A DNA stretch of 64,000 nt from Aplysia californica (GCF_000002075.1 NW_004797831.1:423249-487248); one strand, 5' to 3'; counted from the stretch's first letter, positions 22,601 through 63,009 are shown. Made by a program: numbers and translations. Notes: generated by a model from the letters alone, not told the origin.

Positions 22601-25600
22601 TGTTATAAATAGATACGCTCTACAGTAGGCTAAAATACTGGCCTTGATTCATCCATATTAATTCGTTAATATGGAGAATTTTCTTGTTATTTCTAATAAT
22701 GAACCTGAATAAAGGTGAAAACAAAAGTCTGGCTAGAGGAGTTCTAACAAACCGATATCAGTTGACGATGTACCCAGCCCTAGGTATCAGAGAAATAAAT
22801 AGCAGGCTTACTTTAAAAAAAATTACATTGCTCTACATTACTAGACAGATAACTAACTACATTTTTTAGTAATTCGAAAAAGAGAAAANNNNNNNNNNNN
22901 NNNNNNNNNNNNNNNNNNNNNNNNNNNNNNNNNNNNNNNNNNNNNNNNNNNNNNNNNNNNNNNNNNNNNNNNNNNNNNNNNNNNNNNNNNNNNNNNNNNN
23001 NNNNNNNNNNNNNNNNNNNNNNNNNNNNNNNNNNNNTTCAATCCCCCTCTCTCTGTATCTCTCTCTCTCGTGGTCTATCTCCACGTAATGTGTAGATCTT
23101 TATCTGTCCATCGATCTATCAATTTATCTGTACACCAAACTTTCCTGGCACTAAGAATAAGTTCAACAGGGGTGGAGAGCTAAACAACATTAACATTATT
23201 ATTGTTTATATATATATATTACTGTTCATTTATATTATGCATGTGACTGTAAGCTTGCGTGTGTGTTCATGTTTGTGTGTGTGTGTGTACTATTACTATG
23301 TATGTGTGTGTGTGTATGTGTGTACGTGGTGAAACACCAAATCAATGTTCCAGGATCTGGACAATAAAGATGCTTCTTATCTTATCTTATCTCATCTTAT
23401 AAAACAAGCAAAAGAGACTTAATGCACTGTTAACTGTATTCTCCAACTCCCGAGAAATCATCAGAGAATCAGCATTATCTCTCTCTCAGTGTATGCCACT
23501 AAGACTAAGAGCTCAAAAGTGAAAAGTTCCTTTGGTACAAAATACTCTACAGTTGATCTCACAACAAATGAAGTTCAGTTTCACCAGTCAGTGAACAGGT
23601 GTTCTTCAGCGCACTGGTGAAGTAGCCTCACATCAGACACTACACAAATTTCCAGTGAAGATTCCATCTTGATTGTTTTGCAATGACCCTTAGATTTTCC
23701 TTTTGGCAAGGGATTATAATAAAACGTTTTCGTACAAACCGCCAGCAATAGACAGTATCATCCACTCTGAACAGATTATGTTTACATTACAAAAAAATGG
23801 TTCGAACATACCGAGGTGAGAGGTGCAATGTATTTTCATTTATGCAGATTTCAAAGTTTAAACATTTTGTACTTTTAACTCTGAAGGTATTCCAGATACA
23901 AAGCTGCAAATGCAGTGGGATGGGGCCTTTGAGTCTCTATAAGTTGGATTGTGGACTAATGAGAGAGTGGCGGGCCAGATGAATGACAAGGAAAATGTTG
24001 GCCTGTGAGAATTATTCATTAATATATATATGTATGCAAAATAACATTTTGCTTCAAATCATTGAGAGGCATGGCAAGAAGGAAGTACCGTACTTTGCCA
24101 ACTCTGACACAAAGAACTGTTGTTATCAGTTTATCTGTACACGATAATCAAGTATTTTTTTAAAATACTCAAAAACAAAAAAAAAGTGCCATTTGCTGTA
24201 GAACTGTTATAAAATGTTCAAAACAAATAGATGGTTTCAAAGCAAAATATCTGTAACTTAAAAAGATAAAGGAAATAAAAAAAGAGTTCAACTAGATATC
24301 TACAATAAGTTGTGTGAAGTTAAATATACGGAAATGGGAGCATATGATAAATTTAAATATGAACTTTAAATAAGTTGGTGGTTCTAGCTACTACTACTAA
24401 CTGAGACTTACCTGATTGACTTACTCTTCTTGCTAGAATACATAATTAAATAATAGTCAAAATTGAATGAACTTAGGTGGATAATAATATTATAGGATCA
24501 CTGTTAATTTTTTATTTTTTTAAACAAAATTCCAAACAAACAGCTAGATGTCAACTATCCAAAAAAACAGACACCCCCCCCCCCCCCTTGAGAATTGAGA
24601 ACATCCTATTAATTAATCCCCCTCCCTCCCCCCAATATTCTTAAAATTGGGATCACAAACAAAACAATAAAAAAACATCTACAACAACAATAGTACAACA
24701 GCTCTTATCATCCAAACACTAACTGTATGGCAAGTTCTAATAATTTCAATCAAAGATATATAGTAGCTCTATTATGTCCGCATATGTAGAAAAAATACAT
24801 AATTTGTCTTTAAATTTCAAGGCTGCATAAGATCAGTCAAGACAGGCACACATATCTTGTATTAATATGATGATGATATGAAAAGTTTACTCTAGGATAA
24901 AGTGAACACTGCAAGGATCATTAAGGAGAAACAAAAATGTGAAAAAGACACGGGTGTACAAATATATCTAAAGTAGAGAGAGAGAGAGTCTGTTGTCCCA
25001 AACTCCTCAGCATCTCGAACCAGCATCAACACTATGGAGCTGCATGAAAACTTCCATGAAAAGAGACAAACTGAAGGGGTAGGGGTACATTACAAGACCA
25101 TAAGAAAATCCTACAGGGAACAGCAAAAGAGGGGAGATGAAGATGCTGACGGAGGAAATGATGAGAAGACAACATCAAAGAGTGGGACTGCCCTTGACTT
25201 GAACATCTTACAACAGAAAGCTAAAAACTGAGAAGAGAAAAAGAAAGTGGTTGCAAAACATGCACTGGTGCCCTAACGGTCAGCTAAACAATGGAGTTAT
25301 AAGTTGAATGTGTGGGAGAAATTTGACTGCATGTATTTTAGCGAGAGCTGAGCTTTTGCATGGTTTATATTATATGCTGGATTCAAAAGTAAGTTTTTAT
25401 CTTTTCTCTTGATCATCTTGAAAGAAAAAAAACAACTACTGAACACTAAACTAATGCAACAGATGAAAAAACTTGACTCGGGCAAACAGAAAGACTTCCA
25501 GAAAAAAAGCTTTCAATTAGGTTTTTAATATTTCTCTCGAAAAAAATTTGACCAAATCAATCTCCATTTAAGATAAAGGCTACTTTCCTTTCAATTGCTC

Positions 25601-46044: not shown

Positions 46045-47434
46045 TACATTAATTTTTTAGGGGGGGGGGGGAGGGGGGTTGCCATATGTATGTGTGTGGG
46101 TTAGCCTAGAGGAATGTGTCAGGGGTGAGTGGCCCTGTGAGTACACAAATGCGTAGGTTCCTACTGACATGTTTCTAAGGGCCACCGATCAGAGTCATAA
46201 ATGTTCTTATTATTTTCTCGAAGTCCTTTGGATAATAAGAATTTCAAAATGACAATAATTCATCCCTTGTCTCAAAATTCCCCCAAAAGGGGGTGGGATG
46301 GGGGTGGGGGGTGGGGGGATTCACTGGCTTGCAAAAACAAGGAAAAATTCCCTGAGGGCATATAAATACATGAACACATGATTATGTTAATGCAAAAGTT
46401 GAGCTTTACAACTGTGAAAATTTTGTAAATCAAAGGAACAACGAAATGCTGACTTCATGGGTCTAGAAATGTTGTACCCTTCCTTTTATGGAAGAGTCTC
46501 AGCAACAAATATAAAAACGGGGAACAAAGGCATTGTATCACAAGTGAAAAAATCTTTGTTTCAACAAATGCAGGAAAAACCTATAGATGTAACAACGATG
46601 AACCGGATTCGTAAAGGTATGCCATTTTTACTTTTATGAGTCACAAGTTTTTTGATATGGTCCAATTTTTCAGACAGACAAGTGTCTGAAAGATTACTCA
46701 GATTGATAAGTGTCTGAAATATTACAATCAGTTCTTTGAATAAATTCAAGCAAACTTGTGCGTCTGTCACTCACACAGCAATATACCATTTCCCTTTAAT
46801 AAGCAGTTCGAACTTCTTAAAAATGCAATACAAAAAAAAAAGGGGTTATTTACACAAGTAAGACTTTCTCAATCTAGCAATGCGATGATTTAGCGTAGAT
46901 GTATAAGTGAGGCGTGCTGACAAAATGAGTAACTTCTCGCGATCCAAGAATGGAGGTATTGGCAGAGAATCAGCACTGGGGTCAGACTTATATATAGATT
47001 TTCAGTTGATGCCATTTTGTTCAAGTCTACCGTGTCTTTTATTATTCCATACCGACAAATTGTGGCTAAAACAGCACCTCTCTCTCTCTCTTTCTCTCTC
47101 TTCTGGCGCTGTGGCGTCATAAACGGTCAGCAATGCCGACAGCATGCAGGAACTCAACACTTGCCTGGGGGTCCTTAAAAAGACTAAAAGTGCTGAAAGT
47201 GGGTTACTGAAATGTCCCAGCAGACGGGTAAAAAACCGCACCTAGTACATGGATGGCTGGTGCCGCTATAAATAAATCATTGATGGTCAAGGACTTACAA
47301 ATTGTACAAACTCCACCTACAAAGTTGACGCATCAATTTTTACATACGGCAAAAAATCCGAGACGTCACGCATTTTGTCAGCACACACCTCACATACAAG
47401 CAGTGGGATGATAAGCCCTTGTAGTTCTCGCTGC

Positions 47435-47558
47435 CTACATGTCCACTTCCAGAGCGTACTTCATCAGGCACCCGGTGCCAATGGCGCCCGCAAACATGGC
47501 AGGCACGGCCACTAGGGAGTGAAGTGACAGGAGACCCATGCCAGACAGTCCGTGACCA
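47435..47558 (-). CDS. YeeE/YedE terminal exon
   Basis: cctcag|SGHGLSGMGLLS...AMFAGAIGTG...VDM* (TAG). Confidence 0.9.
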
Positions 47559-50500
47559 CTGAGGGGGGAAGATAAAAACAAAGGTCATTATTATCATTAT
47601 CTTCTTCACCATCATCATCATCCTTAACTTCTTCATCATCATTATCATCATTATCTTCTTCACCATCATCATCATCCTTAACTTCTTCACCATCATCATC
47701 ATCCTTAACTTCTTCATCATCATTATCATCATTAACTTCTTCTTCATCATTATCAATATAATCATTAACTTCTTCATCATCATCATCATCATCATCATCA
47801 TTATTATTAACTTCTTTATTATCACTATCATCATCATCATCATTACTACAAACCAAACAATATGAATTTTTCTTGTTTTTCTTGAAGCATAATAGTTTGT
47901 ACCATGTTGGCACAGAACCAAAAACGGACATGAGACAAAAAAAAAAAAGACAAAACAAAGCACAGTCGACAAATACTGCAATAGTGCAAGTAAGGGAATA
48001 CACACAATATCTCCTTACAGCTGTGTCCGGCTATTGCTGGAATCCAAGAAGGGCAAAAAGGAAAGATATTCCCATATATATATATATCCGATCAGGACAT
48101 TGGGAAGTCTCTTGTTAGAGAGACAACTTCCTGGGCCTTCGGCATATTGTGGTAGGGTGGCCAGTTCCTTTCCACGCCGCCTTTATTTCCCCAACTCGAA
48201 GTCAGGTACCCATTACTGCTGGGTGGGCAGGAGGGGGCGAAAAAAATCTGCGTCTGAACCGAGGCTCGAACCCGGACTTTCCGTTTCGGAGGCGAGCCCA
48301 CTAACCGCTCCGCCACTGCACCCTTGAGAGAGAGAGAGGGTTTCTGTGCAAAACACAAAATGAATAAAAATCACCTTACAGTAGGAGGAACACCGATTTC
48401 TGCATTTCCTAAATTTTGACGAGCCTCTGATTCCGCGGCGAAGATATACAACTCTTTATCAGTTCTTCTTCTTCTTTTTCCTCATTCTCGTCATTTATTA
48501 GTTAAAACCTTTTCAAGAATCAAAAAGTGTGCAATTTTTCCCTGTGGACTCGTTCAGTGCGTCCCCTCACCTGGTGCATCCGGAGGCCATCCTAGCTCCG
48601 AAGATCATGAGCAGACCACCCACCAGCGCGCTCATCGGGCCCACGCCGTCCACGGTGTGCAGAGTTCCCGACGCCTGGGCCGACAGATGCGCTCCCACAA
48701 CAGCACCGCCCACAAAGATCACCTGGCGGAGGAGAACATATGGGAATCTCAAACACTTGAAAGTAAAGTATATCTCTTCCGAAACACACGAGAATCAAAC
48801 ACTAGAAAGGAAAATATATCTCTTCCAAATATGATATATGTTGGGTGGCGGGGGGAAACACATGAGAATGATACTCTAGAAAGTATATTATATCTCTTCC
48901 AAAACAGACGAGAATCAAACACTAGAAAGTTTTAGTTTAGTTTTACGGCACTTGCAACACAATAAGGTCACATAAGTGCCGAAGATTAAAGGTGTTACAA
49001 GAGAGTAACAAACACAAAAACGAATGAGGGGAGATAAAGACGTTAGATGTTTGATAGGAAAGAAGAAGCAAACCACACCAGAGTTCCCGCCAACCTCCCA
49101 CAAACACTACAAAGTAAAATATATTTCTTCCAAAACACACGAAAATCAAACACTAGAAAGTAAAAGATATTTCTTCCAAAACACATGAGAATGAAACACT
49201 AGAAAGTAAAATATATTTCTTCCAATACACACGAAAATCAAACACTAGAAAGTAGAAAAATATGATATGTTGGGCAGTGGGGGAAACCCCCAGATAGGCC
49301 TAATTGTGAGGCGTCCTGACAAAATGAGTTACTTCTCATCTCTCAATCTATGATTAGAGATATCGGCTGAAAATCGACAAAGGAGTCAAACTTGTTCATT
49401 TTCAACTGATGCCACTTTCTACATTCTTCCATCATTTAATTTCCACCAAAACTGTAATCTATCAAAAGAACTTCCACTCATTCTGGGGATTGGTTAAGCC
49501 GAAAACTTTGGTAGCAAGTGAGCACCATGAGCAGGTTTTGAGGCCAACTAGGATAATATAGGATTTTTTAAAGAGCATGCAAGCAGAGAAATGGCGAACG
49601 GCGAACCCTGATCGCCGACGTCAGTTTCAGATCTATCACTTTCTGATGAGGAAACACTGACAAGTCCTACCTGCCACCAGTTTGACATGCCGCTGGTGAA
49701 CCCGCTGAGATAAGCGAGCGGCCTCTCGAGAGGGGGAATGTGCAGAGCCTGAGACGCTATGGTGCAATAGCTAGAGCTGGAACCTGCAGATAAAAGGAAA
49801 GCTGAAGATACACACCATGGGGTCCACCGATGATAAGATAATGACAATTGAAATAACGAGAACCTGGTCTAAACGAGACAATCCTTGTTCTCCGTTTTTC
49901 TCTGTATATTTACTTCTATAATATAATGATATACTGAAATAGTGAGACTCGCCGTTAGCAATTTCAGTAACAGCAGAAGTATTGTAACCCGTCAGTGTTT
50001 GAAGAATAGAACATGCTGAGAGGGTAACAGCTCAACAATCTTCGCTCAGGGTTTTAGCAAAAAAATCACTTTTTTAAAAACAGATTCCAAGGCACTGGTG
50101 AGGGGCATATGCCTTGTACAAAACCTCAGAGTTAAATGACTGTTTAAAAAATGGACAGTGGTAAAGTTCCATACAATTTATCTTGATATGAAAGATATTG
50201 CAGAGAAAAATCAGTTGGTTTTTTTTCCTCCTGTAAAATTTGAAAAAATTACGATAAATGTGCAGCTGCTCCGCAGTGCATTGACATTTCAAACAAAGAA
50301 TTCACAGGATTCATAAAACTACCCTAGGAGACAGCAGGATATTGACATTTCAAACAAAACCTTTTACAAGATTCATAAAACTATGCTTGGAGACAGCAGG
50401 GTATTGACATCTCAAACAAAGATTTTTCCAAGACTCATAAAACTACGCTAGGAGACGTACCTAAAGTGTCGTGGAGGATGAGAACTGCCGGAGCCTGGAG

Positions 50501-53500
50501 CGATCCGATCAACATTCCCACCACAAAAGGAGGCCATGACCTCAGGCCGAAGAGACCCGAGCCAGACTGTTCCACCTGCAGAAACAATTACTATTATTAT
50601 TAATGATTATTATAAAATATTCACCCACAATATGAGCAATTTAACACTTTGCAGTCACACAGCCAGGAGTACAAAATACCCCATCTGGTCACCCAGCCAG
50701 GAGAGCGACTGCATAGGACTTCTCCGGTCTGGCGCCAGGTGACCAGAACGGATAATTTTCACCAGCGCATTATTGCGCCAAGAAACCGCAAAGTGTTAAA
50801 AGAAGAAAGAGGTAAACAAGTATACCCCCTCATATTATACGTAAAACATAAGCCCCTTTCTTAAGACATTTTCCTTTTAATCATTGATAACTGATGTGAA
50901 ATTAGCATTGGACAGAATATTGTTAACAGAACTAGTTTCCTGAATTTTACTCTTGATTTTTGCATGAAATATTCAGTACATTTGCGTGACTGGTACTTGA
51001 TTTCTTGCTTGTTGAGCCCACTCCGTCATGTCAGAAATTCGTCCAGTATTATAGTCACGACCTACAAAAATGAGCCGATTTTGGAACCAAAGTATATCGC
51101 CTGTATTATACACAAGTCGTCATGCTGTCTGTTTTGGGTGTCTGATTTGAGAAGGGAGAGTCGAATCAACATAAAACAAGTCATTCAGTGTCAGAAAGAG
51201 CAAAGCATGCGTTAACCTTTTCCCTCCGGCTCGCCACTTTGCCACCTTTAAGAAGTTAAAATTTCCTTGAAACCCATCTCAATGTATTTCCAAGTGGGGC
51301 ATTAACACCTGTCAGTATGAGGGTGAGCATCAACGCCTACAAAAATAAACCAAACCGGCCCACTAGTGGGGGATACTTCCCAGATTGGCAAGCATCGCCC
51401 TACATGAACCTGTCTCCTTACTGTTACATTTGTGGTGTCAGTGGTCCAGTGGTTAGGCTACCAGACTCGCAACCATAAGGTTGTGGGTTCGAATCCTGTC
51501 AGGGACGAGACGATGTGTCCTTGAGAAAGGCACTTTGCATGAATTTTCCTTAATTCTCCATGGTGGAAATGGGTATCCAGCTATGGACAGTGAAAGATCT
51601 TGTATGTTTGTTCATGTTTGAGCGCATGAAATCCACAGCTGCCACTGTATGCTTCCTGGGAAGCCAAGAATATTTATGAGTGTTCTAGGATCTGTTGGGG
51701 TAATAATGGTTGTAAAGCATATAGAGCATGCTGTTGAGCGTAGATATGCACTATATAAATACAACTAACATTATTATCATTACATTACCTCAGTGGTCCA
51801 CGGGAAGAAAACCTCAAGCCCAAAGACAAAGAGACCCATGAGAGCAGCCAATGGAAGAGCCATGTTGAAGTAAGGTGTGCCCATTTGCTCATCCAGTCTG
51901 AAAATCATCAGAACAACAAATAACAAGTAAACTAAACATCAAATGTAAGTAGCATGTAGTCAAAATTCAACTCTAGTCAGTTTTCTTCTCAGATGAAAAA
52001 GATATGTATTATAATATGATTTTAGTCACAACATAAAGTATTGTCTGTGGTTGTTACCTGTATTTGTAAAGCGCTCAGAGCCTGTGTTCTTCAATCGGGG
52101 TAGAATGCTATACAAATGTCATGTAATTGGACAAGATGTTAGGAGAATTTTTTAATTAAAAAATTATAAATTTTTTTTTTTGGGGGGGGGGGGGGGGGGT
52201 TGCAATGTGTCTTTGAGAGTGATGAAGGCTGAAGGTGATGATGATTGTACCATTAATCTATGTGGAAAAAGTAAAATAATCTGTGCAATCTGGTTTATTG
52301 TATTCCATAAAGCTTCGTAACACTGAATGTTACTTCTTTCACTCAAAACAAAACCTCAATTCTGTTCATAAAACGACTTTTACTGAATTCTCCCGCTGTA
52401 TAGCACATCAAAAACATCTTTATCTTACATTTGCACACAAAGCAAGCTAATTATGCTGTACATATACAAAAAAGGGAAATCTAAAGAGAAAAGAACTTAC
52501 TTTGACGGTTGTTTCGCCCTCTTCCTGTAAATGGAGTAGGGAAGGACCGGGTCAGTGAGGGCGTACAGGTAAACACCCAGCAGGCCGCCCGTCACAGTCA
52601 GAACTGAAAAGTTTGGTTTTAGTAGAGGTTTTACGGCGCTCGCAACTGCATAAGGTCATATGATGAACGCCAGAAGATTAGAGGTGTTACAAGAGAGTAA
52701 CAAACATAAAAAAAGAAGAAGGGGAGATAAGGACGATAGATGTTTGATAGGATAGAAGGAGCAAACCACACCAGAGCACCCGCCAACCACCCACAGAACT
52801 GAAAAGCAGCAGACATTAAATAAATGAAGTAAGTCATAAAACAACTATAGTCTAGCACACACATAGTGAAACTGGCAGGACAAAGAAATATTTTCATTCT
52901 GAATTTCGCTACACGTGTGTTGTGTTAAGACAAAGAATAAATGCCCTTTTTTTTGAGTAAGGAGAAGCACATCGACACAATAAAGGTCATTTCACCTTCA
53001 CCTATCCCATAGACTGGATGACTGTCAGGGCGCTTTTGAAGATTGGTCATTTAGTGCTGGGAAAAAGTAAGACAGACAGACAGAAACAACAGAGGGAAAG
53101 TAACGAAGTAGGACCCTACAAGAGGTGTCCTCCAACTATCCGCTGAAGAGACAAATATGCTTTCTGCACTGTCACTTGTGTAAACTGCCACTTGTGTAAA
53201 CCGTCACTCGTGTAAACTGCCACTTGTGTAAACCGTCACTCGTGTAAACTGTCACTTGTGTAAACTGTCACTTGTGTAAACTGTCACTAGTGTAAACTGT
53301 CACTTGTGTAAACTGTCACTTGTGTAAACTGTCACTTGTGTTGTAAACTGTCACTTGTGTAAACTGTCACTTGTGTAAACTGTGTAAACTGTCACTTGTG
53401 TAAACTGTCACTTGTGTAAACTGTGTAAACTGTCACTTGTGTAAACTGTCACTTGTGTAAACTGTCACTTGTGTAAACTGTCACTTGTGTAAACTGTGTA

Positions 53501-56500
53501 AACTGTCACTTGTGTAAACTGTCACTTGTGTAAAACTATAAACCGTCACTTGTGTAAACTGTCACTTGTGTAAACCGTCACTTGTGTAAACTGTCACTTG
53601 TGTAAACTACTTGTGTAAACAGTCACTTGTGTAAACCGTCACTAGTGTAAACCGTCACTAGTGTAAACTGTCACTTTTGTAAACTGTCACTTGTGTAAAC
53701 CGTCACTTGTGTAAACTGTCCCTATTTCCTCACCTGAATGCGGGACGGCTGCCCCAACCTGAGCTAGCACCATTCCTGGACACTGTGGGAGACACAAGTT
53801 TAGTTGAGTTTTAGTAAAAGAGTATCGTAATATTAGGTGTTTTAAGGCACTAGCAACACAATAAGGTCATTTATAAGTTCCGAAGATTAGATATGTTACA
53901 AAAGAGTGACAAACACAAAAAAGGAGGAGAAGAGATAAGAACGACAGATGTTTAATAGGAAAGGAGCAGACCACACCAGAATACCCACCAACCACCCACT
54001 GATCAAAACAACAAACACAGAGAAAACACAGACCACTTATTGAAGCCCATGATTTGTCTGATCTTCCTTCTAAACGATCTAAATACTAAATAGTGTTGAT
54101 GAAGGCGTAAAACTTCTACAATGATCTCATCTCCTTTGACAAAATAACAGTTCAAGAACACGGTGCAAAGACAGATCACATTTTATTCGTTTCCGAGGAA
54201 TATGCACAACCTGTAAAAAAAATGACTCAGGCATACCTGTAGCTTAGCTCAACGTCTGACAAAAGTTATAAAAAAACAACCAAACCCAAAAACAATGATA
54301 AACGACTTCAGCCCTAATGAATATATTCATCCCGTCATTAACCGTTCCTCACCGCGCCAGCGAGAGTCATGCCGGTGCCTAAGATGGCCGCCCCGAGACC
54401 CGTCCCAAAGATTGTCTTGTAGCGGAGACCACACATGTACTCCTGCACTGCGCGCTGCATCTTCCTACGAGTCGCCGGGATCATCGTGAGGAAGGAGAAC
54501 ACCAACATCCCTGGGGAAGTAGCACATGAATGATGAGCTGGAGTCCACAGCTTTTGAACTGACAGCCAAAAGGGTGTGTATTTTTAAAAAAGGGTAGCGA
54601 TATTTCAACGGCATGTCGTCTGAAGATCGTAGTTGATATTTCCACGGCATGCTGTCTGAACATCAGAAGTGATACCTATACGGTAGGCTATGCCGAATTG
54701 TTTTTATTTTCAGGCGACGAGTCGGGTGATTATTCTACCCGACCCGATCTGATCCCATCCGCAAATGGGCACCCTACTGTTGGAAAAAAAAGTCGTCTCT
54801 CCATTTTGCTTGCACAAAGTAAATTGTGCATCTCTCATTCTCGTTACAATCACACAAAATATTTCATCATTGTCAATAAAGCACAAAATGATAGCAAAGG
54901 ATAAATATTGTTAACTAAACATACAGGTATCTTAAATTGTATAGTTTTACAGCACTTGCAACACAATAGCTTATATAAATGTTGAAGACTAAAGGTGTTA
55001 CTAGAGATCAACATACAAAAAAAGAAAGAAAGAGGAGATACAAAGGACGATAGATGTCTCATGGGAAAGGATTGTCTATGATTTAAACAAGACAACACCA
55101 GCTCAAAACAGGCCACTCAGCACACTGCAGTCACCAGCATACAGAGTCTATCCAATTGAAATTATTGTTGGTGTCATGCCGATTGCTGTGTAAATATTCA
55201 TGTGTAAAAAAAATTCATTATCATTGTCGATCGACTGTGAGCAAGGACAAAAAAAAAGTGGTCATTTCAGCCTTTCCTTTTTCTTTCTTGATCAGTGCAG
55301 AGAAGCGCTAACCAGGTATTTCATATAACAAAATGCTGCCATTGAGATATTAAGTCGAAATTTTCCAAGGTGGCAACTCATTATTGAGGAGAAAAGTGAC
55401 TGTCTTAGAGGTGTGGATGTCTTGGAAATTGTCATTATAATATTTCCAAAATGCTGGGTGGGAATGAGAAGTGATTGTTTGCAAGGGTGATTATTTTCGG
55501 CAGGTTGCTATTAATAATAATAATAATAGATAGCATTAGTATAGCACAAAGTCCCACTCAACAGCAAGCTCTATACACTTCACAATCTATATTAGAGCAG
55601 GTCCGACAGTATTAACAAACTTGATGATCACTTGAAGTCAAAGCGAGGAAAAATCTAAAATGTTATGGCTCTAGAAAGCAGAAAGGAAATATTAGCTTCT
55701 GAGGAAGAAATCCCTCCCCCCCCCTCCTTCTTTAATGCCTGTTATTTCATATATATTACAGCACAATGTGATTGTACCGCCATGTGTTAGTCAACAATGA
55801 ACAGTACTTGCATGCACATTTGTATGTCCATATGATATTGTATAAACTGCTGTAATGGCATTGAAACTATTATCTTTTTTAATCCAAAAAGACTCCTACC
55901 TGTGGCAGATGCTGAAACAAACATTTTCATCATGGTGAAATTCTGTAACACCATCTGTTGCCGAATTATTTGAGGTTCGAACACTGCAGAGAAAAAAAAA
56001 AGACAATCGAAAGGTTATTAAACAATTATTAAAATAATTTTAAAGACAGTATCACTGAAAAAGACAGAGGAGAGGCACACACAACACAAGAGCTCGCATC
56101 AGCCATCTGCATCTTCTGATTCAGAGAGCTGGATACACTTTCATCATGGACCTCCACTTCACTCAGTCTTGTGTTGCAGCAATGGTGTCTGGTGGATACA
56201 CTTTAACCCTTTCCTATTCACCCTGACCAATAAAAAAGGCAAGAGCTAGAGTTTAACTTTGTAGAAACTAGCTGAACAGGCCCCGTGAGGTTTCTTACGT
56301 GGGATGTCCTCAACCACACCCTGAGGAGACCCCCGACAAGCATCATCAGGCAGGCTTTAACGTGGAACCCACAAGGAAAACATAAGAACGGAAGACCAAA
56401 GGTGACATGGAGGCGAGCGGTACAAGCGGAAATTGAAAAAGCAGGGACATCATGGAAACAGCTAGAAAAGGATGCTCAGGATGGGCTTCGCTGGAGTAAT

Positions 56501-56956
56501 GTTGTTGATGGCCTGTGCTCCACTAGGAGTTAAAAAGGGCAAGAGAGAGAGAGAGAGATGTCCTCAACGGTACACTTGGCTGTACTGATACAAATAGATC
56601 ACAACCTCCCCCCCCCCTCCCCTCTCAAATAAAGTGACAGATATCTTCAATATTTACAGTTCAGCATACGATTAGCAATAAGCAAAGGCTCTAAAATTTC
56701 CCATCTATAACGAAGAGAAATTAAATTTGACTAGAGTACACTGAGTTGTCGGAAAAGGGGAGATGATCAGTGTCAGTGACTTACCTCTGCCCTTTTCCAG
56801 AGCTAATCCAAACAGGACACCCATGATGATACTGGTTGCTATTTTTATCACAGGATTAAACTCTTGAGATCTTGCAGGCATTTCGGGAGTATCGTCGGGA
56901 CCTTCGTCTTTCCAGTGAAAACGGTATCTGACATCCTTTTCCTCAGGACTCGACAT
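47435..56956 (-). CDS. YeeE/YedE (sulfur transport, TsuA/PmpAB-like) polytopic membrane protein, 10 coding exons, 392 aa
   Basis: Exons 56956-56785, 55983-55900, 54510-54353, 53782-53734, 52603-52501, 51897-51789, 50575-50461, 49783-49671, 48722-48571, 47558-47435 join in frame (1179 nt). Motifs GVLFGLALEKGRVFEP, GTGMTLAGACPG, WPPFVVGMLIG, LGSSSSY, GGLLMIFGARMASGCTSGHGLSG. Confidence 0.9.
47585..47846. repeat. (ATC)n-derived simple repeat
   Basis: degenerate ATC/TTC triplets. Confidence 0.9.
48086..48325 (-). mobile_element. tRNA-derived SINE, family B
   Basis: reverse complement of the 19719 copy. Confidence 0.8.
48571..48722 (-). CDS. YeeE/YedE exon 9
   Basis: gccag|VIFVGG...GGLLMIFGARMASGCT AG|gtgagg. 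Confidence 0.9.
48930..49100 (-). mobile_element. Family A copy inserted in a ~47-bp minisatellite
   Basis: sequence similarity. Confidence 0.75.
49671..49783 (-). CDS. YeeE/YedE exon 8
   Basis: ctgcag|GSSSSYCT...NWWQ|gtagga. Confidence 0.88.
50280..50456. repeat. ~60-bp unit, three tandem copies
   Basis: ATTGACAT.TCAAACAAA...TCATAAAACTA..CT.GGAGAC. Confidence 0.8.
50461..50575 (-). CDS. YeeE/YedE exon 7
   Basis: ctgcag|VEQ..SWPPFVVGMLIGSLQAP..DTL G|gtacgt. Confidence 0.88.
51433..51785 (+). mobile_element. tRNA-headed CORE-like SINE
   Basis: A box TGGTCCAGTGG, B box GGTTCGAATCC, CORE-like GTGTCCTTGAG.AAGGCACTT..AAATGGGTA, short ATT-repeat tail. Confidence 0.6.
51789..51897 (-). CDS. YeeE/YedE exon 6
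   Basis: ttttcag|LDEQMG...LEVFFPWTTE|gtaatg. Confidence 0.87.
52501..52603 (-). CDS. YeeE/YedE exon 5
   Basis: ttttcag|VLTVTGGLLGVYLYAL...QPS AA|gtaagt. Confidence 0.87.
52612..52793 (-). mobile_element. Family A copy whose 13-bp TSD duplicates the exon 5 acceptor
   Basis: CAGAACTGAAAAG at 52599-52611 and 52794-52806. Confidence 0.85.
53168..53720. repeat. 16-bp minisatellite, ~35 copies
   Basis: CTGTCACTTGTGTAAA units. Confidence 0.92.
53734..53782 (-). CDS. YeeE/YedE exon 4 (CPG motif)
   Basis: cacag|CPGMVLAQVGAAVPHS G|gtgagg. Confidence 0.88.
53799..53998 (-). mobile_element. Family A copy ending ~16 nt before the CPG exon
   Basis: sequence similarity. Confidence 0.75.
54353..54510 (-). 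CDS. YeeE/YedE exon 3
   Basis: ccccag|GMLVFSFL...LGAAILGTGMTLAGA|gtgagg. Confidence 0.88.
54940..55070 (-). mobile_element. Degraded family A copy
   Basis: 3' hairpin and body similarity. Confidence 0.6.
55900..55983 (-). CDS. YeeE/YedE exon 2
   Basis: ctgcag|VFEPQIIRQQMVLQNFTMMKMFVSASAT G|gtagga. Confidence 0.88.
56315..56556 (+). mobile_element. 5'-truncated RTE-clade LINE 3' end
   Basis: same C-terminal peptide, (GA)n tail, TSD GATGTCCTCAAC. Confidence 0.85.
56785..56956 (-). CDS. YeeE/YedE coding exon 1
   Basis: acceptor ccag| with the exon starting at 56978, accATGT start, ..GVLFGLALEKGR G|gtaagt. Confidence 0.88.
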
Positions 56957-59405
56957 GGTAGTGAGGCTGCCGGTTTTCCTGGAAGAAGCAAATCAAAAGG
57001 TCAAAACCAATAACAAAGATTGTCCTTTCATTCTAAATTCTTTTACATCAACTCTTGATCCATTAAACACGGTGAAGAAAAACAAAAATATACTTCATAT
57101 TATCACTTTCTGAAAACCACAGAAGAAATTGAAAATACTGACAGGGAAAAAAGACACGTTATACAACCCCATCTTTACTGAAAAAACATCTCAACTTTGG
57201 CATACTGATCTTGAACACCATCTAAATAGGTGAGCCTCACTGTCTATTATGAAGGTGATCTTAAATGAAACATTGAAGTTGTGTAGTAGTAGTAGGATTT
57301 TCGGTATTCGTTACGAGCAAATTACCACTTCTGATAATAAAATTGAAAAGTGGGGGAGAAAGTACCATAGAATTCCCAACATACTTTAATCAAGTTTTCA
57401 TGTCGACAAAACAAAACAGATAATTATAAAAGAAATTCAACTCCAGAAATGGAAAAAAAAAGAACTTTGCACAAAATAGAAATGAAGTGGAGCAAGAGAA
57501 TAGAAAACAGAAATGGGCCAAGAGGAAAAGAGAGAAAACATAGAGGTAATTCAAAGGTAAAAGTAAAAACCAATAACAGGGATAGTCTTTTCATTCTAAA
57601 TTCTTTAAGTCAACTTTTCATTAATTCAACAGGAATAAACAAAGGACAAATACTTCACACTATTACATTCTGAAAATGCCAAAAAACATCACAAGAATAT
57701 TTTTTAAATGGTTAATTAAACACAAAACTTAAGTAACAGAAGGCTAACAGACCTTTGGGCATTGGAACAAAGTTGAAAACAAAACATCACTCTTGTAGAA
57801 AGAAAAAACTTTGAATTTTTTAAACTCTTGAACTTTCATGTAAGAATACCATGCTCATAGACTCATAGACACCACGTGTGAACAATCACTTTTTGTGGCT
57901 TGTGGTTCTGTAGACAACAGGTGGAAAAAAACCCTAGGAAATTTGATATATGTGTGCTTTCTCCACACAGACTAATAATTTCATTGTCCACGCAAGCTCT
58001 CTTTAAAGTCAAGGCTTTGTGTACGATGGACTTGATATTTGATATGTATGCAACAATGAATATATCAGTGTCATGTCTCTATGGAGAGCCTTCAATTAAC
58101 TTTCCTATTACTATTACATAAGCATAATGTGTGCCTCCTTTTTTTAATGGTGTACAGAGGTCAAAAGATGATGAAATGAATGACATATTTATATATATAT
58201 GATGTCAGCTTTATTTCTACTCATTCATTCATTATAATACAACATGACTACAGGTGAAAAGTACAGCTTTTAAAGTACATGGTAGAATTATATGTTAAAC
58301 AGGGAAAATATTTCAAACATAATTTAGCATTATGTTAAAGAAAAGTGTACCATCACAAGGAGAGCTCCCCTTACCCCCTCCCCTAGAAAAAATCTGAACA
58401 CTGTTTTCTTCTTCTTTGTGTTCCCCTGCTAACTACTAAATCACAAAGTAGTCTACACTGCTTGTTTCAACCTGCAGAACAACTGATGTGAACGTTTTTC
58501 CTACTTCATAAAGCCCCTGTCTTCAAGTTTTTCAGACAGCCACATTCCCAATTTGAAGGAACTCTATATTTTTAAAAATACTGAAATAAGTGTTTTCAGT
58601 TTTGGTGGGATCTTTAACGTGCACAGCTTGCACATGGTACTTCGAAGAATTTTCACCCTCATCTGAGAAGGCTATATTAGGAGTTCAATTTTACCTGCCC
58701 TACGATCATAGTATGTGAAAGAGAGAACAGATGCAGTTGAAAAAGTCAGGAGAAAGGAAGAGAAGAGCAGAGAGGAAGCCAGAGGTAGGGGTGGGGAAAG
58801 GAGTGAGGAAATGTAGAGGACAGCGGATGATAGAACAGTGCTAGAGAACAGGATAATAATGGAGCAAACTTTCAAAGAAAAAATGTTTATTTGTCTCTGG
58901 AATATTTCAATTCAAGGAACTTTTGACTGATACTTGATAGATGAACACAGCATCTCTATAGTTTCATAACACGTGTCCCTTTAAAAACAAAACAAAACAA
59001 AACAAAAAAACTGTTGCTATCGTCTAGACAACAAAACTTACATGTTTTCATATATTTCAGGAAGGCACACAGTAGACAGAGGCACAGCACACAGTCGACA
59101 CAGGCACACAACCAGGCTATGAGATGAAAATACCTCAAGAAAATCACCCCGACTGAGCGAGTTTTGCCAAACCGGACGTGTACTCCTCTGTGCTGCTGTG
59201 ACAAGACCAGCACATGAGAACCTCAAGTAAAAATGGACAAAAAAGAACATTGTAGCTTACTATAAAACTGCCTTTGAAAATAATCTTTTACAAAAGAAAC
59301 CATCCAAACACTCTTTTATCTTTAAAAAAAGTGACAAAAGGACAGACAAATTTTCCTAAGTTAAGTAGTTAAGTAAAAAATAATTAGCCTATAAATTATA
59401 AAAAT

Positions 59406-61288: not shown

Positions 61289-63009
61289 TCTCTCTCTCTT
61301 TCTTCTTTTGTTACTTCTGGCACTGACTGCAAAAATACCATTCAGACCCTTACTATTCGTCGATACGTATCAGAACTATTTTAACCTCCCCCAGTATCAA
61401 CATGTGCTATCTCCAAATGCATAACCTCAGAATCAGTTAAGAGAAGGAGAGAAGAAAGAAAGGTTGACGTTGGAACCCGGAAATGGTTGTCAAACGAACG
61501 CAATCATTGCCTGTTCTAGTACAGNNNNNNNNNNNNNNNNNNNNNNNNNNNNNNNNNNNNNNNNNNNNNNNNNNNNNNNNNNNNNNNNNNNNNNNNNNNN
61601 NNNNNNNNNNNNNNNNNNNNNNNNNNNNNNNNNNNNNNNNNNNNNNNNNNNNNNNNNNNNNNNNNNNNNNNNNNNNNNNNNNNNNNNNNNNNNNNNNNNN
61701 NNNNNNNNNNNNNNNNNNNNNNNNNNNNNNNNNNNNNNNNNNNNNNNNNNNNNNNNNNNNNNNNNNNNNNNNNNNNNNNNNNNNNNNNNNNNNNNNNNNN
61801 NNNNNNNNNNNNNNNNNNNNNNNNNNNNNNNNNNNNNNNNNNNNNNNNNNNNNNNGGATAATAATAACAACAATAACAACAATAATAATATTATTATTAT
61901 AATCATCATAATCGAAATCGTGTGATACGATCTACGTTTTCAATGAAAGTAGAAACTAAAGGGAGACAATTCAATAACTATGCATGAAACATCGAAAAAA
62001 ATATCGCCAGTTGTTGTCCTTAGACCAGAGATCTCTATCTCAAATTATCCCTTTTGGCCGCTTGAGGTAGGGTCTGGGCTAGGGNNNNNNNNNNNNNNNN
62101 NNNNNNNNNNNNNNNNNNNNNNNNNNNNNNNNNNNNNNNNNNNNNNNNNNNNNNNNNNNNNNNNNNNNNNNNNNNNNNNNNNNNNNNNNNNNNNNNNNNN
62201 NNNNNNNNNNNNNNNNNNNNNNNNNNNNNNNNNNNNNNNNNNNNNNNNNNNNNNNNNNNNNNNNNNNNNNNNNNNNNNNNNNNNNNNNNNNNNNNNNNNN
62301 NNNNNNNNNNNNNNNNNNNNNNNNNNNNNNNNGGTCGACAGTTCGTTGCGCAACTTATTGTCAAACATTTCCTAAACTATCGAACATAAACTTACCAGCT
62401 TTTGCACAAAGACGTGTATTAATTTGTCTTAAAATATCAAAATTTGTGTAAACACCTATTAGCTGTATTCCAGACAATTCCTTAACAAATGCTAATACAA
62501 GATTCCAGTGGATGGTTTCTACAGATTTCAATAGGTTTACAGTTGGGGCAATATTGCTTTTAAAAGCAAGTCCGTCATTTTTATTTTTTTTTGTAATCGC
62601 GACATTACGCTTAATGAATATAGAATTTGAGAACCTTTAGTGTGAAAAGGTGTTCGCCATAAAATTAATTTCTTGAAACAAGTTTCGATACTAAAAGTGT
62701 CATTGGTGAGCTGTGACGTAGACCATATGTGTATACAACATTTTAATGTGTGTGAGAGGCGGGAAGTGCTGTGAACAATCCCATTTTCCGCGTGACTGAA
62801 ATGTGTAGTATTTTAAATAAATTTATGAAGAAAAGTGTTTAAATCCAACCTTAATTGTTGTGGGAAAATATGATTAAGTGAAGTCAAATTGATACAAACT
62901 GCTGTGCAAAGTACGGGTGACATTGATTCACCAGTTAAAGAGATATTTCAGAAAAAGTTGCGCCACGAATTTTTGACGACACTATTGGAGTGTTTGCTCC
63001 TTTAAAAAA

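Follow-up and report, generated by a model that had tools for sequence, protein, structure and literature searches.

A spliced Aplysia californica gene encodes a predicted YeeE-fold membrane protein that appears to be the single-chain equivalent of split proteobacterial gene pairs

We analysed a stretch of 64,000 nucleotides (nt) of Aplysia californica DNA (the window, to whose full length all coordinates refer) and describe here a gene on its minus strand that runs from 56956 to 47435. It consists of ten exons and nine introns, and its coding sequence of 1179 nt gives 392 amino acids (aa) followed by a TAG stop. The predicted product is a member of the YeeE/YedE family of bacterial-type sulfur-compound transporters, and its closest bacterial counterparts are adjacent gene pairs in which the two halves of the protein are encoded separately. 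The exon model was rebuilt from the window DNA, and residue numbers are those of the 392-aa model unless isoform X2, the RefSeq protein of this gene, is named. The gene is laid out below from its 5' end; the transmembrane (TM) helices and the loops LA to LD are those of the predicted fold.

56785 to 56978, minus strand: exon 1, coding part 56956-56785 with the ATG at 56956; starts at 56978 as an internal exon of isoform X2
55900 to 55983, minus strand: exon 2, 84 nt, phase 1; 'VFEP' of loop LA and the next helix
54353 to 54510, minus strand: exon 3, 158 nt; last residues GMTLAGA, directly ahead of the LB cysteine
53734 to 53782, minus strand: exon 4, 49 nt; first codon Cys139, CPG loop LB
52501 to 52603, minus strand: exon 5, 103 nt; TM4 of the N-half
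51789 to 51897, minus strand: exon 6, 109 nt; central ninth TM helix joining the two halves
50461 to 50575, minus strand: exon 7, 115 nt; start of the C-half, WPPF...GSLQAP...DTLG of loop LC
49671 to 49783, minus strand: exon 8, 113 nt; SSSSY of loop LC through NWWQ
48571 to 48722, minus strand: exon 9, 152 nt; last residues GARMASGCT, with Cys350 in loop LD
47435 to 47558, minus strand: coding part of exon 10, SGHGLSG... to the TAG stop at 47437-47435
47295 to 47434, minus strand: 3' untranslated region (UTR), at least this far; RNA contig X7 starts at 47295 and continues into exon 10

All nine introns begin with GT and end with AG behind a pyrimidine tract. Both cysteine motifs are split by an exon junction: GMTLAGA/CPGM (residues 132-142) by that of exons 3 and 4, where the Cys139 codon (53782-53780) opens exon 4, and GARMASGCT/SGHGLSG (residues 343-358) by that of exons 9 and 10, with the Cys350 codon at 48578-48576. 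Exon 1 encodes the non-conserved N-terminal tail, TM1 and the 'EKGR' of loop LA, and exon 2 carries a Phe at the site of the first conserved Cys of TsuA. The runs of N in the window (22889-23036, 61525-61855 and 62085-62332) all lie outside the gene. The 392-aa model corresponds letter for letter to residues 9-400 of the NCBI entry 'UPF0394 inner membrane protein YeeE isoform X2 [Aplysia californica]' (P0087, 400 aa), and the gene is therefore already annotated. In isoform X2, a further 5' exon gives the opening two letters of a start codon that lies earlier, which adds eight residues (MKTGSLTT); exon 1 has a corresponding upstream acceptor AG at 56980-56979. The whole-protein tests of family, fold and homology that follow were made with the isoform X2 protein and not with the joined 392-aa model.

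Assembled RNA contigs from two runs belonging to two studies gave six collinear pieces on exons 10 to 5, with 0 mismatches (X7, 1612 nt at depth 140; X13, 1374 nt). The pieces end within 5 nt of the exon edges of the model, and the overhanging letters fit either side of the joint; X7 leaves about 750 nt for exons 4 to 1 and the 5' UTR. RNA support covers exons 5-10, and introns 1-4 are supported by the identity with isoform X2 and by end-to-end collinear alignment with orthologues. A sequence-only reading of this DNA had called ten GT-AG exons, a 392-aa product and both cysteine loops: the exon coordinates and motifs were reproduced to the base, and the spliced RNA joins exons 5-10 exactly.

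Isoform X2 matches Pfam Sulf_transp (PF04143; COG2391) with 134.7 bits against a threshold of 27, its residues 63-386 covering positions 1-309 of the 310 of the profile, and ten full-length relatives likewise match it end to end. When Pfam was searched exon by exon, only exons 9 and 10 gave matches: the stop-free frame around exon 9 alone reached 31.9 bits (profile 230-282), and exon 10 carries the match on (283-309). The same exon-by-exon search of NCBIfam gave matches to TsuA/YedE models, all weak. Exon 9 alone matched no solved structure, and its profile search returned 77 matches of at most 62% identity, which included the first full-length relatives.

The AlphaFold model of isoform X2, for which an alignment of 28 eukaryotic homologues served as input, has a predicted local distance difference test score (pLDDT) of 88.6 and a predicted template modelling score (pTM) of 0.86. 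It contains 17 helical elements, with nine long TM helices, the central ninth being residues 206-227 of isoform X2, and four short re-entrant loop-helix elements (LA to LD). In a Foldseek search of the PDB, YeeE/TsuA entries were the sole matches (6LEO, probability 1.0, template modelling score 0.74), and every other entry scored below 0.2. Residues 1-26 of isoform X2 have a pLDDT below 50; the N-terminal stretch of 40 residues is acidic, lacks conservation and is predicted to be disordered, and by inspection it seems unlike a classical mitochondrial presequence. Family match and model together identify the Aplysia protein as a Sulf_transp (YeeE/YedE) member with a predicted YeeE fold, in which the LB and LD cysteines align with those of TsuA. 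The family assignment made from the DNA alone is borne out on both counts.

In loop LB, C91 of the S. thermophila protein and C94 of the E. coli protein align with Cys139 (Cys147 of isoform X2), and in loop LD, C293 and C302 align with Cys350 (Cys358 of isoform X2). Across 28 eukaryotes, Cys358 of isoform X2 never varies, and the conservation of Cys147 is 90% or higher. In loop LA, C22 and C25 align with a Phe in Aplysia; this site is Phe in 74% of 27 eukaryote rows and in 93% of 79 rows from the long bacterial pairs described below.

Thiosulfate is the main product of sulfide detoxification in marine invertebrates, and the protein could be a TsuA-type thiosulfate transporter of the plasma or an organellar membrane, exporting for example the thiosulfate that arises from mitochondrial sulfide oxidation. 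It has the same fold as TsuA, its top NCBIfam matches are two TsuA models, and the NCBI orthologue name 'thiosulfate transporter TsuA-like' implies such a role. It also keeps the two cysteines, C91 and C293, that are indispensable in S. thermophila YeeE, for which a cysteine relay has been put forward (PMC7449682). The TsuA models (NF041049 and NF052577), however, give 47.7 bits against a cut-off of 400 and 28.9 against 645, and because these scores lie far under the cut-offs, the Aplysia protein is best seen as a member of the superfamily but not as a TsuA equivalog, despite the NCBI names. The LA cysteine, which is Phe in Aplysia, is essential in E. coli TsuA. E. coli TsuA also depends on a TusA-like partner, TsuB/YeeD (PMC11073785); a six-frame search of the 927-Mb Aplysia assembly, which is draft and intron-rich, gave 0 matches to the TusA-family domain PF01206, and a control with rhodanese, a domain of similar size, gave six by the same method. 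The family is, moreover, far nearer to the CPG/GCTSGHG split pairs than to TsuA. A TsuA-type transporter is on these grounds a possible reading, although a rather unlikely one.

To place the protein among bacterial relatives, one genome per bacterial or archaeal species was searched with patterns from the eukaryote alignment, and the 80 best loci were kept. They belong mostly to Alphaproteobacteria (Elioraea, Xanthobacter, Rhodoplanes, Pseudolabrys, Afipia, Ferrovibrio, Thalassobaculum and others), with a few Beta- and Gammaproteobacteria, one Desulfovibrionales and one Pirellulaceae. All 80 are split into two adjacent frames with a stop and a short spacer between them: the first, of about 171 aa, aligns with the animal C-half (GCTSGHG; Pfam profile 171-310), and the second, of about 206 aa, with the animal N-half (CPG) and the central helix (Pfam profile 1-155). 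An even sample of 201 alphaproteobacterial genomes contained this long pair in nine, always split and with the C-like half first; the single-chain form occurred in none of the 201.

The same proximity is seen when bit scores are taken against a profile of the 28 eukaryotic sequences. The halves of the long pairs reach 135-170 bits each, compared with 51.7 bits for the whole E. coli TsuA protein, 29-42 bits for short half-size paralogues, and at most 31 bits for full-length paralogues of the same alphaproteobacterial genomes (which were not typed as SoxT); E. coli YedE gives no match at E 1e-5. The pair on S. meliloti pSymA, which is the probable YedE1E2 of PMC10812762 as assigned by position and not by locus tag, scores 37.4 and 29.5 bits; it was reached by the profile only, and a tblastn search with isoform X2 found no match among 72,556 plasmids.

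By these comparisons, the nearest bacterial relatives are proteobacterial, mostly alphaproteobacterial, split pairs and not TsuA, and the animal protein is best described as the single-chain equivalent of a long pair, with its halves in the reverse of the bacterial gene order. The earlier description of the gene as a two-half fusion holds in that the halves do exist as separate adjacent bacterial genes (80 of the 80 best loci, and nine of the nine carriers in the sample). A simple read-through fusion is rejected, because the bacterial pairs encode the C-half first and plain read-through does not explain the animal chain. The swapped order would follow from a rearrangement, or from duplication of the pair and fusion across the middle.

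Around the long pairs, no cluster of neighbouring genes recurs in more than 10 of 79 loci; the neighbours include a flavin adenine dinucleotide (FAD) monooxygenase, a MetE-like protein, FixG and a luciferase-like monooxygenase. Afipia, Xanthobacter and Elioraea genomes with a long pair also encode a full-length Sulf_transp protein that scores 177-199 bits to Pfam and at most 31 to the eukaryote profile, and some of them carry short half-size pairs as well. Up to three Sulf_transp subfamilies are therefore present per genome.

Among eukaryotes, we examined the 120 best relatives of the nearest full-length match, classified by their source names. They include gastropods, bivalves, a brachiopod and annelids (among them Paralvinella and Ridgeia); crinoids, starfish, urchins, brittle stars and a sea cucumber; Saccoglossus and three Branchiostoma entries; the sponge Ephydatia, the choanoflagellate Salpingoeca and a chytrid-like fungus; and Guillardia, Triparma, Leptophrys and other marine eukaryotes. 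Two of the matches lie on contigs with plainly eukaryotic neighbour genes. Orthologues named 'YeeE-like' or 'TsuA-like' are annotated in dozens of molluscs, annelids, brachiopods, echinoderms, hemichordates and amphioxus, and the occurrence of YeeE-like proteins in eukaryotes is mentioned in PMC11073785. Among the 120 best matches there is no vertebrate, arthropod or nematode, which is a lead and not proof of absence, and full-text literature searches found no paper on an animal member. The expectation of the sequence-only reading that neither a mammalian nor a characterised animal member is known agrees with this. Its picture of a 'domesticated' gene, with the rarity that this implies, has to be given up, as the gene is annotated in RefSeq as YeeE and has homologues across many invertebrates, a sponge, a choanoflagellate, a fungus and protists.

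The exon structures of three orthologues (Lingula, Asterias and Salpingoeca), mapped from their genomic loci, give an indication of age. Eight of eight Lingula introns stand at the Aplysia place in the same phase (seven exactly, one three columns off in a gapped stretch), as do seven of eight in Asterias (five exactly, two within 1-2 columns); in Salpingoeca, the count is 0 of 8. The 49-nt and 152-nt exons keep their length in both Lingula and Asterias, and the 84-, 158- and 103-nt exons have equal length in Lingula, the 84-nt exon with the same phase too. Judging from these shared positions, the last ancestor that molluscs, brachiopods and echinoderms have in common already had most of the present introns. 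The gene was therefore interrupted by the time of the protostome-deuterostome ancestor and has been vertically inherited since. Two origins had been offered for the gene, ancient transfer or loss in other lineages. A transfer into molluscs is rejected on account of the intron positions common to Lingula and Asterias, and loss elsewhere after an ancient origin is the option that fits.

A quick maximum-likelihood tree of the concatenated halves groups 27 eukaryotes in one clade, with a Shimodaira-Hasegawa-like approximate likelihood ratio test (SH-aLRT) value of 100. Branchiostoma P0121 was left out of this tree, and P0067 was never in the alignment. In these two Branchiostoma proteins, the loop-LC segment IGLLQLVITLSVGDTLGGSSSYCTV... 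occurs twice (P0067, 496 aa) and more than 10 times (P0121, 911 aa), which could be tandem exon duplication or an artefact of assembly or annotation.

The isoform X2 protein matches the 927-Mb assembly, which has 4332 contigs, at this locus only, and the gene is therefore single-copy. Four of its introns carry a dispersed Aplysia repeat of about 175 bp.

48928 to 49103, no strand assigned: ~175-bp dispersed Aplysia repeat, intron 8
52616 to 52795: copy of the ~175-bp repeat, intron 4; its end lies 13 nt upstream of the exon 5 acceptor
53839 to 53999: copy of the ~175-bp repeat, intron 3
54939 to 55069: copy of the ~175-bp repeat, intron 2

At least 17 copies of this repeat lie within the window. 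A first look across the genome gave 5265 candidates, and the 40 that were scored have 88-94% identity and lie on many contigs. These copies bear on whether the gene could come from contaminating bacteria, could have reached molluscs by a recent horizontal transfer, or could be a dead pseudogene. The great majority of the family's members are bacterial, and the nearest non-eukaryotic relatives are proteobacterial, as such an origin would have it; yet the gene has nine spliceosomal introns, four of them bearing a high-copy Aplysia repeat, it yields spliced RNA in two studies, its intron positions are common to a brachiopod and a starfish, and the eukaryotic proteins form one clade. The reading frame is intact, and all family-invariant residues are kept. 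All three readings are refuted, with next to no probability left to them, and the earlier exclusion of contamination is upheld by the host repeats in the introns, the spliced RNA and the animal-specific intron positions.

Several other observations concern these introns. RNA contigs use the exon 5 acceptor at 52603 despite the repeat copy just upstream. Intron 4 also contains a minisatellite at 53168-53720, with a 16-nt unit ACTGTCACTTGTGTAA in about 36 copies (83% match), which starts 14 nt downstream of the exon 4 donor, and a TCA-rich microsatellite/27-mer array occupies 47585-47843 of intron 9, 27 nt upstream of the exon 10 acceptor; read mapping passed over 47587-47966 as repeat. Between 46900 and 52700, polyA reads of runs X21 and X22 stack on intronic repeats on both strands and leave the exons empty; at 49020 and 52627-52628 their loose ends are poly-A or poly-T. 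This suggests that the reads stem from repeat copies transcribed from elsewhere in the genome.

Concerning function, we regard it as probable on balance, from the model and the conserved residues, that the protein is a YeeE-fold conduit for sulfane sulfur and, as second choice, for thiosulfate, and that it corresponds in a single chain to the split pairs. The conduit would be narrow and probably passive. Sulfane-sulfur-bearing species may be passed between the thiols of Cys139 in LB and Cys350 in LD, which are predicted to lie opposite one another at the hourglass's waist. In YeeE, loops LA to LD converge at this waist, and the conserved cysteines are about 7 Å apart along the proposed path (PMC7449682). 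A relay of this kind has been proposed for TsuA, and the same two cysteines are required in YedE1E2. We favour sulfane sulfur of the persulfide/polysulfide type as the putative cargo because of the two-cysteine design, the CPG and GCTSGHG motifs of YedE1E2-type pairs, and the lack of a detectable TusA/YeeD partner. On the cytosolic side, the cargo might be passed on to glutathione or to a rhodanese, and the likely role would be sulfide detoxification in aquatic animals exposed to sulfide.

A number of points weigh against this interpretation. For every eukaryotic member, we infer the substrate, the direction and the membrane, and the same holds for all that is said of transport apart from the fold and the conserved residues. 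None of the characterised relatives is close to the eukaryote profile (37 and 29 bits for the S. meliloti pair, 52 for E. coli TsuA), and the long pairs, which are the closest relatives, are uncharacterised, with gene neighbourhoods that vary and give no clear clue. The absence of TusA from a draft, intron-rich assembly is weak evidence. The quick tree does not resolve the placement of the eukaryotes among the proteobacterial pairs, and the branch of its TsuA outgroup is very long. Finally, in a third study, two polyA RNA-seq runs are essentially devoid of reads over the exons of the gene, and we therefore take expression to be restricted or low in some samples rather than ubiquitous.

An apparently low or restricted expression would also suit a protein that handles another chalcogen cargo, such as sulfite or the selenium compounds proposed for YedE, or one that acts mainly as a sensor or signal transducer in the manner of SoxT1B. 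We know of no regulator-type partner in eukaryotes, which counts against a sensor. SoxT1B, of the same superfamily, does serve signalling (PMC11582611), and the YedE/FdhT selenium models (NF033796 and TIGR04112) give weak matches; these amount to 23 bits against a cut-off of 350, and E. coli YedE, as noted, goes unmatched by the eukaryote profile. We consider such a cargo or signalling role improbable.

The sulfane-sulfur conduit that we prefer can be set in a wider scenario, which we put forward tentatively and think unlikely to hold in all its parts. The eukaryotic YeeE-like proteins would derive from one ancient acquisition of a proteobacterial split pair that became fused with its halves swapped, and they would represent the missing sulfane-sulfur or thiosulfate conduit of detoxification in aquatic animals, kept in sulfide-exposed lineages and lost in groups that are absent from the 120 best matches, for example vertebrates. 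The acquired pair was possibly alphaproteobacterial or mitochondrial; the quick tree does not resolve a mitochondrial origin.

The gene itself is no discovery, as it is annotated in RefSeq and eukaryotic YeeE-like proteins appear in the literature (PMC11073785). What is new is that the gene model has been checked exactly and is backed by RNA, that common introns give the gene an age, that the nearest bacterial subfamily has been identified together with the reversed order of its genes, and that the protein departs from the features specific to TsuA. In addition, the animal protein provides a clean example of a permuted gene fusion. Marine invertebrates cope with sulfide by oxidising it to persulfides and thiosulfate, and how these cross membranes is only partly known. 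A conserved YeeE-fold protein with a predicted cysteine-lined path, present across invertebrates, annelids from vents among them, and protists, is therefore a concrete and testable candidate for the crossing of sulfur species. The link to the split pairs gives a way in for experiments, since the same set of assays can be applied to the bacterial pair and to the animal chain.

Among known systems, SoxT1A and SoxT1B of Hyphomicrobium denitrificans and YedE/FdhT have the superfamily and the overall architecture in common with the Aplysia protein. SoxT proteins have three cysteines and a sox/TusA context (PMC11582611), whereas the Aplysia protein keeps two. TsuA/YeeE of E. coli and S. thermophila (PDB 6LEO and 8J4C) is closer in form, with the same single-chain nine-helix hourglass fold and the same order of N- and C-halves. 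Its LB and LD cysteines are shared with Aplysia, at an overall identity of about 20%; in TsuA, however, loop LA carries a third cysteine and TsuB/YeeD is required, and Aplysia has Phe at the site of this cysteine and no TusA-family gene that we could find.

YedE1E2 of C. pinatubonensis and S. meliloti is an importer of zero-valent sulfur that forms glutathione persulfide and has one essential cysteine per half (PMC10812762), and PmpB and PmpA of the Serratia PmpAB system align with the N- and C-halves, respectively, each keeping one cysteine (PMC11582611). These short pairs share with Aplysia the CPG and GCTSGHG motifs and a single conserved cysteine per half at LB and LD. The YedE1E2 assay worked without a TusA partner, and in the short pairs, as in the long ones, the C-like gene comes before the N-like gene. 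They differ in being two four-helix chains of about 130-145 aa that lack the central helix, whereas Aplysia has a single 392-aa chain with a central ninth helix, and their LA loop is unlike that of Aplysia.

The long pairs, for example those of Elioraea, Xanthobacter, Afipia, Rhodoplanes and Tepidicaulis, resemble the animal protein most: EK(S/G)RVFEP, GACPG, LG(A/S)SSSY and GARxAxGCTSGHG are nearly identical, the same two cysteines and the Phe at the site of TsuA C22 are present, and the CPG half has an extra fifth helix that corresponds to the central helix of the animal protein. The two systems differ in their arrangement, as the long pairs are two intronless adjacent genes with the GCTSGHG half followed by the CPG half, whereas the animal protein is one chain in which CPG precedes GCTSGHG.

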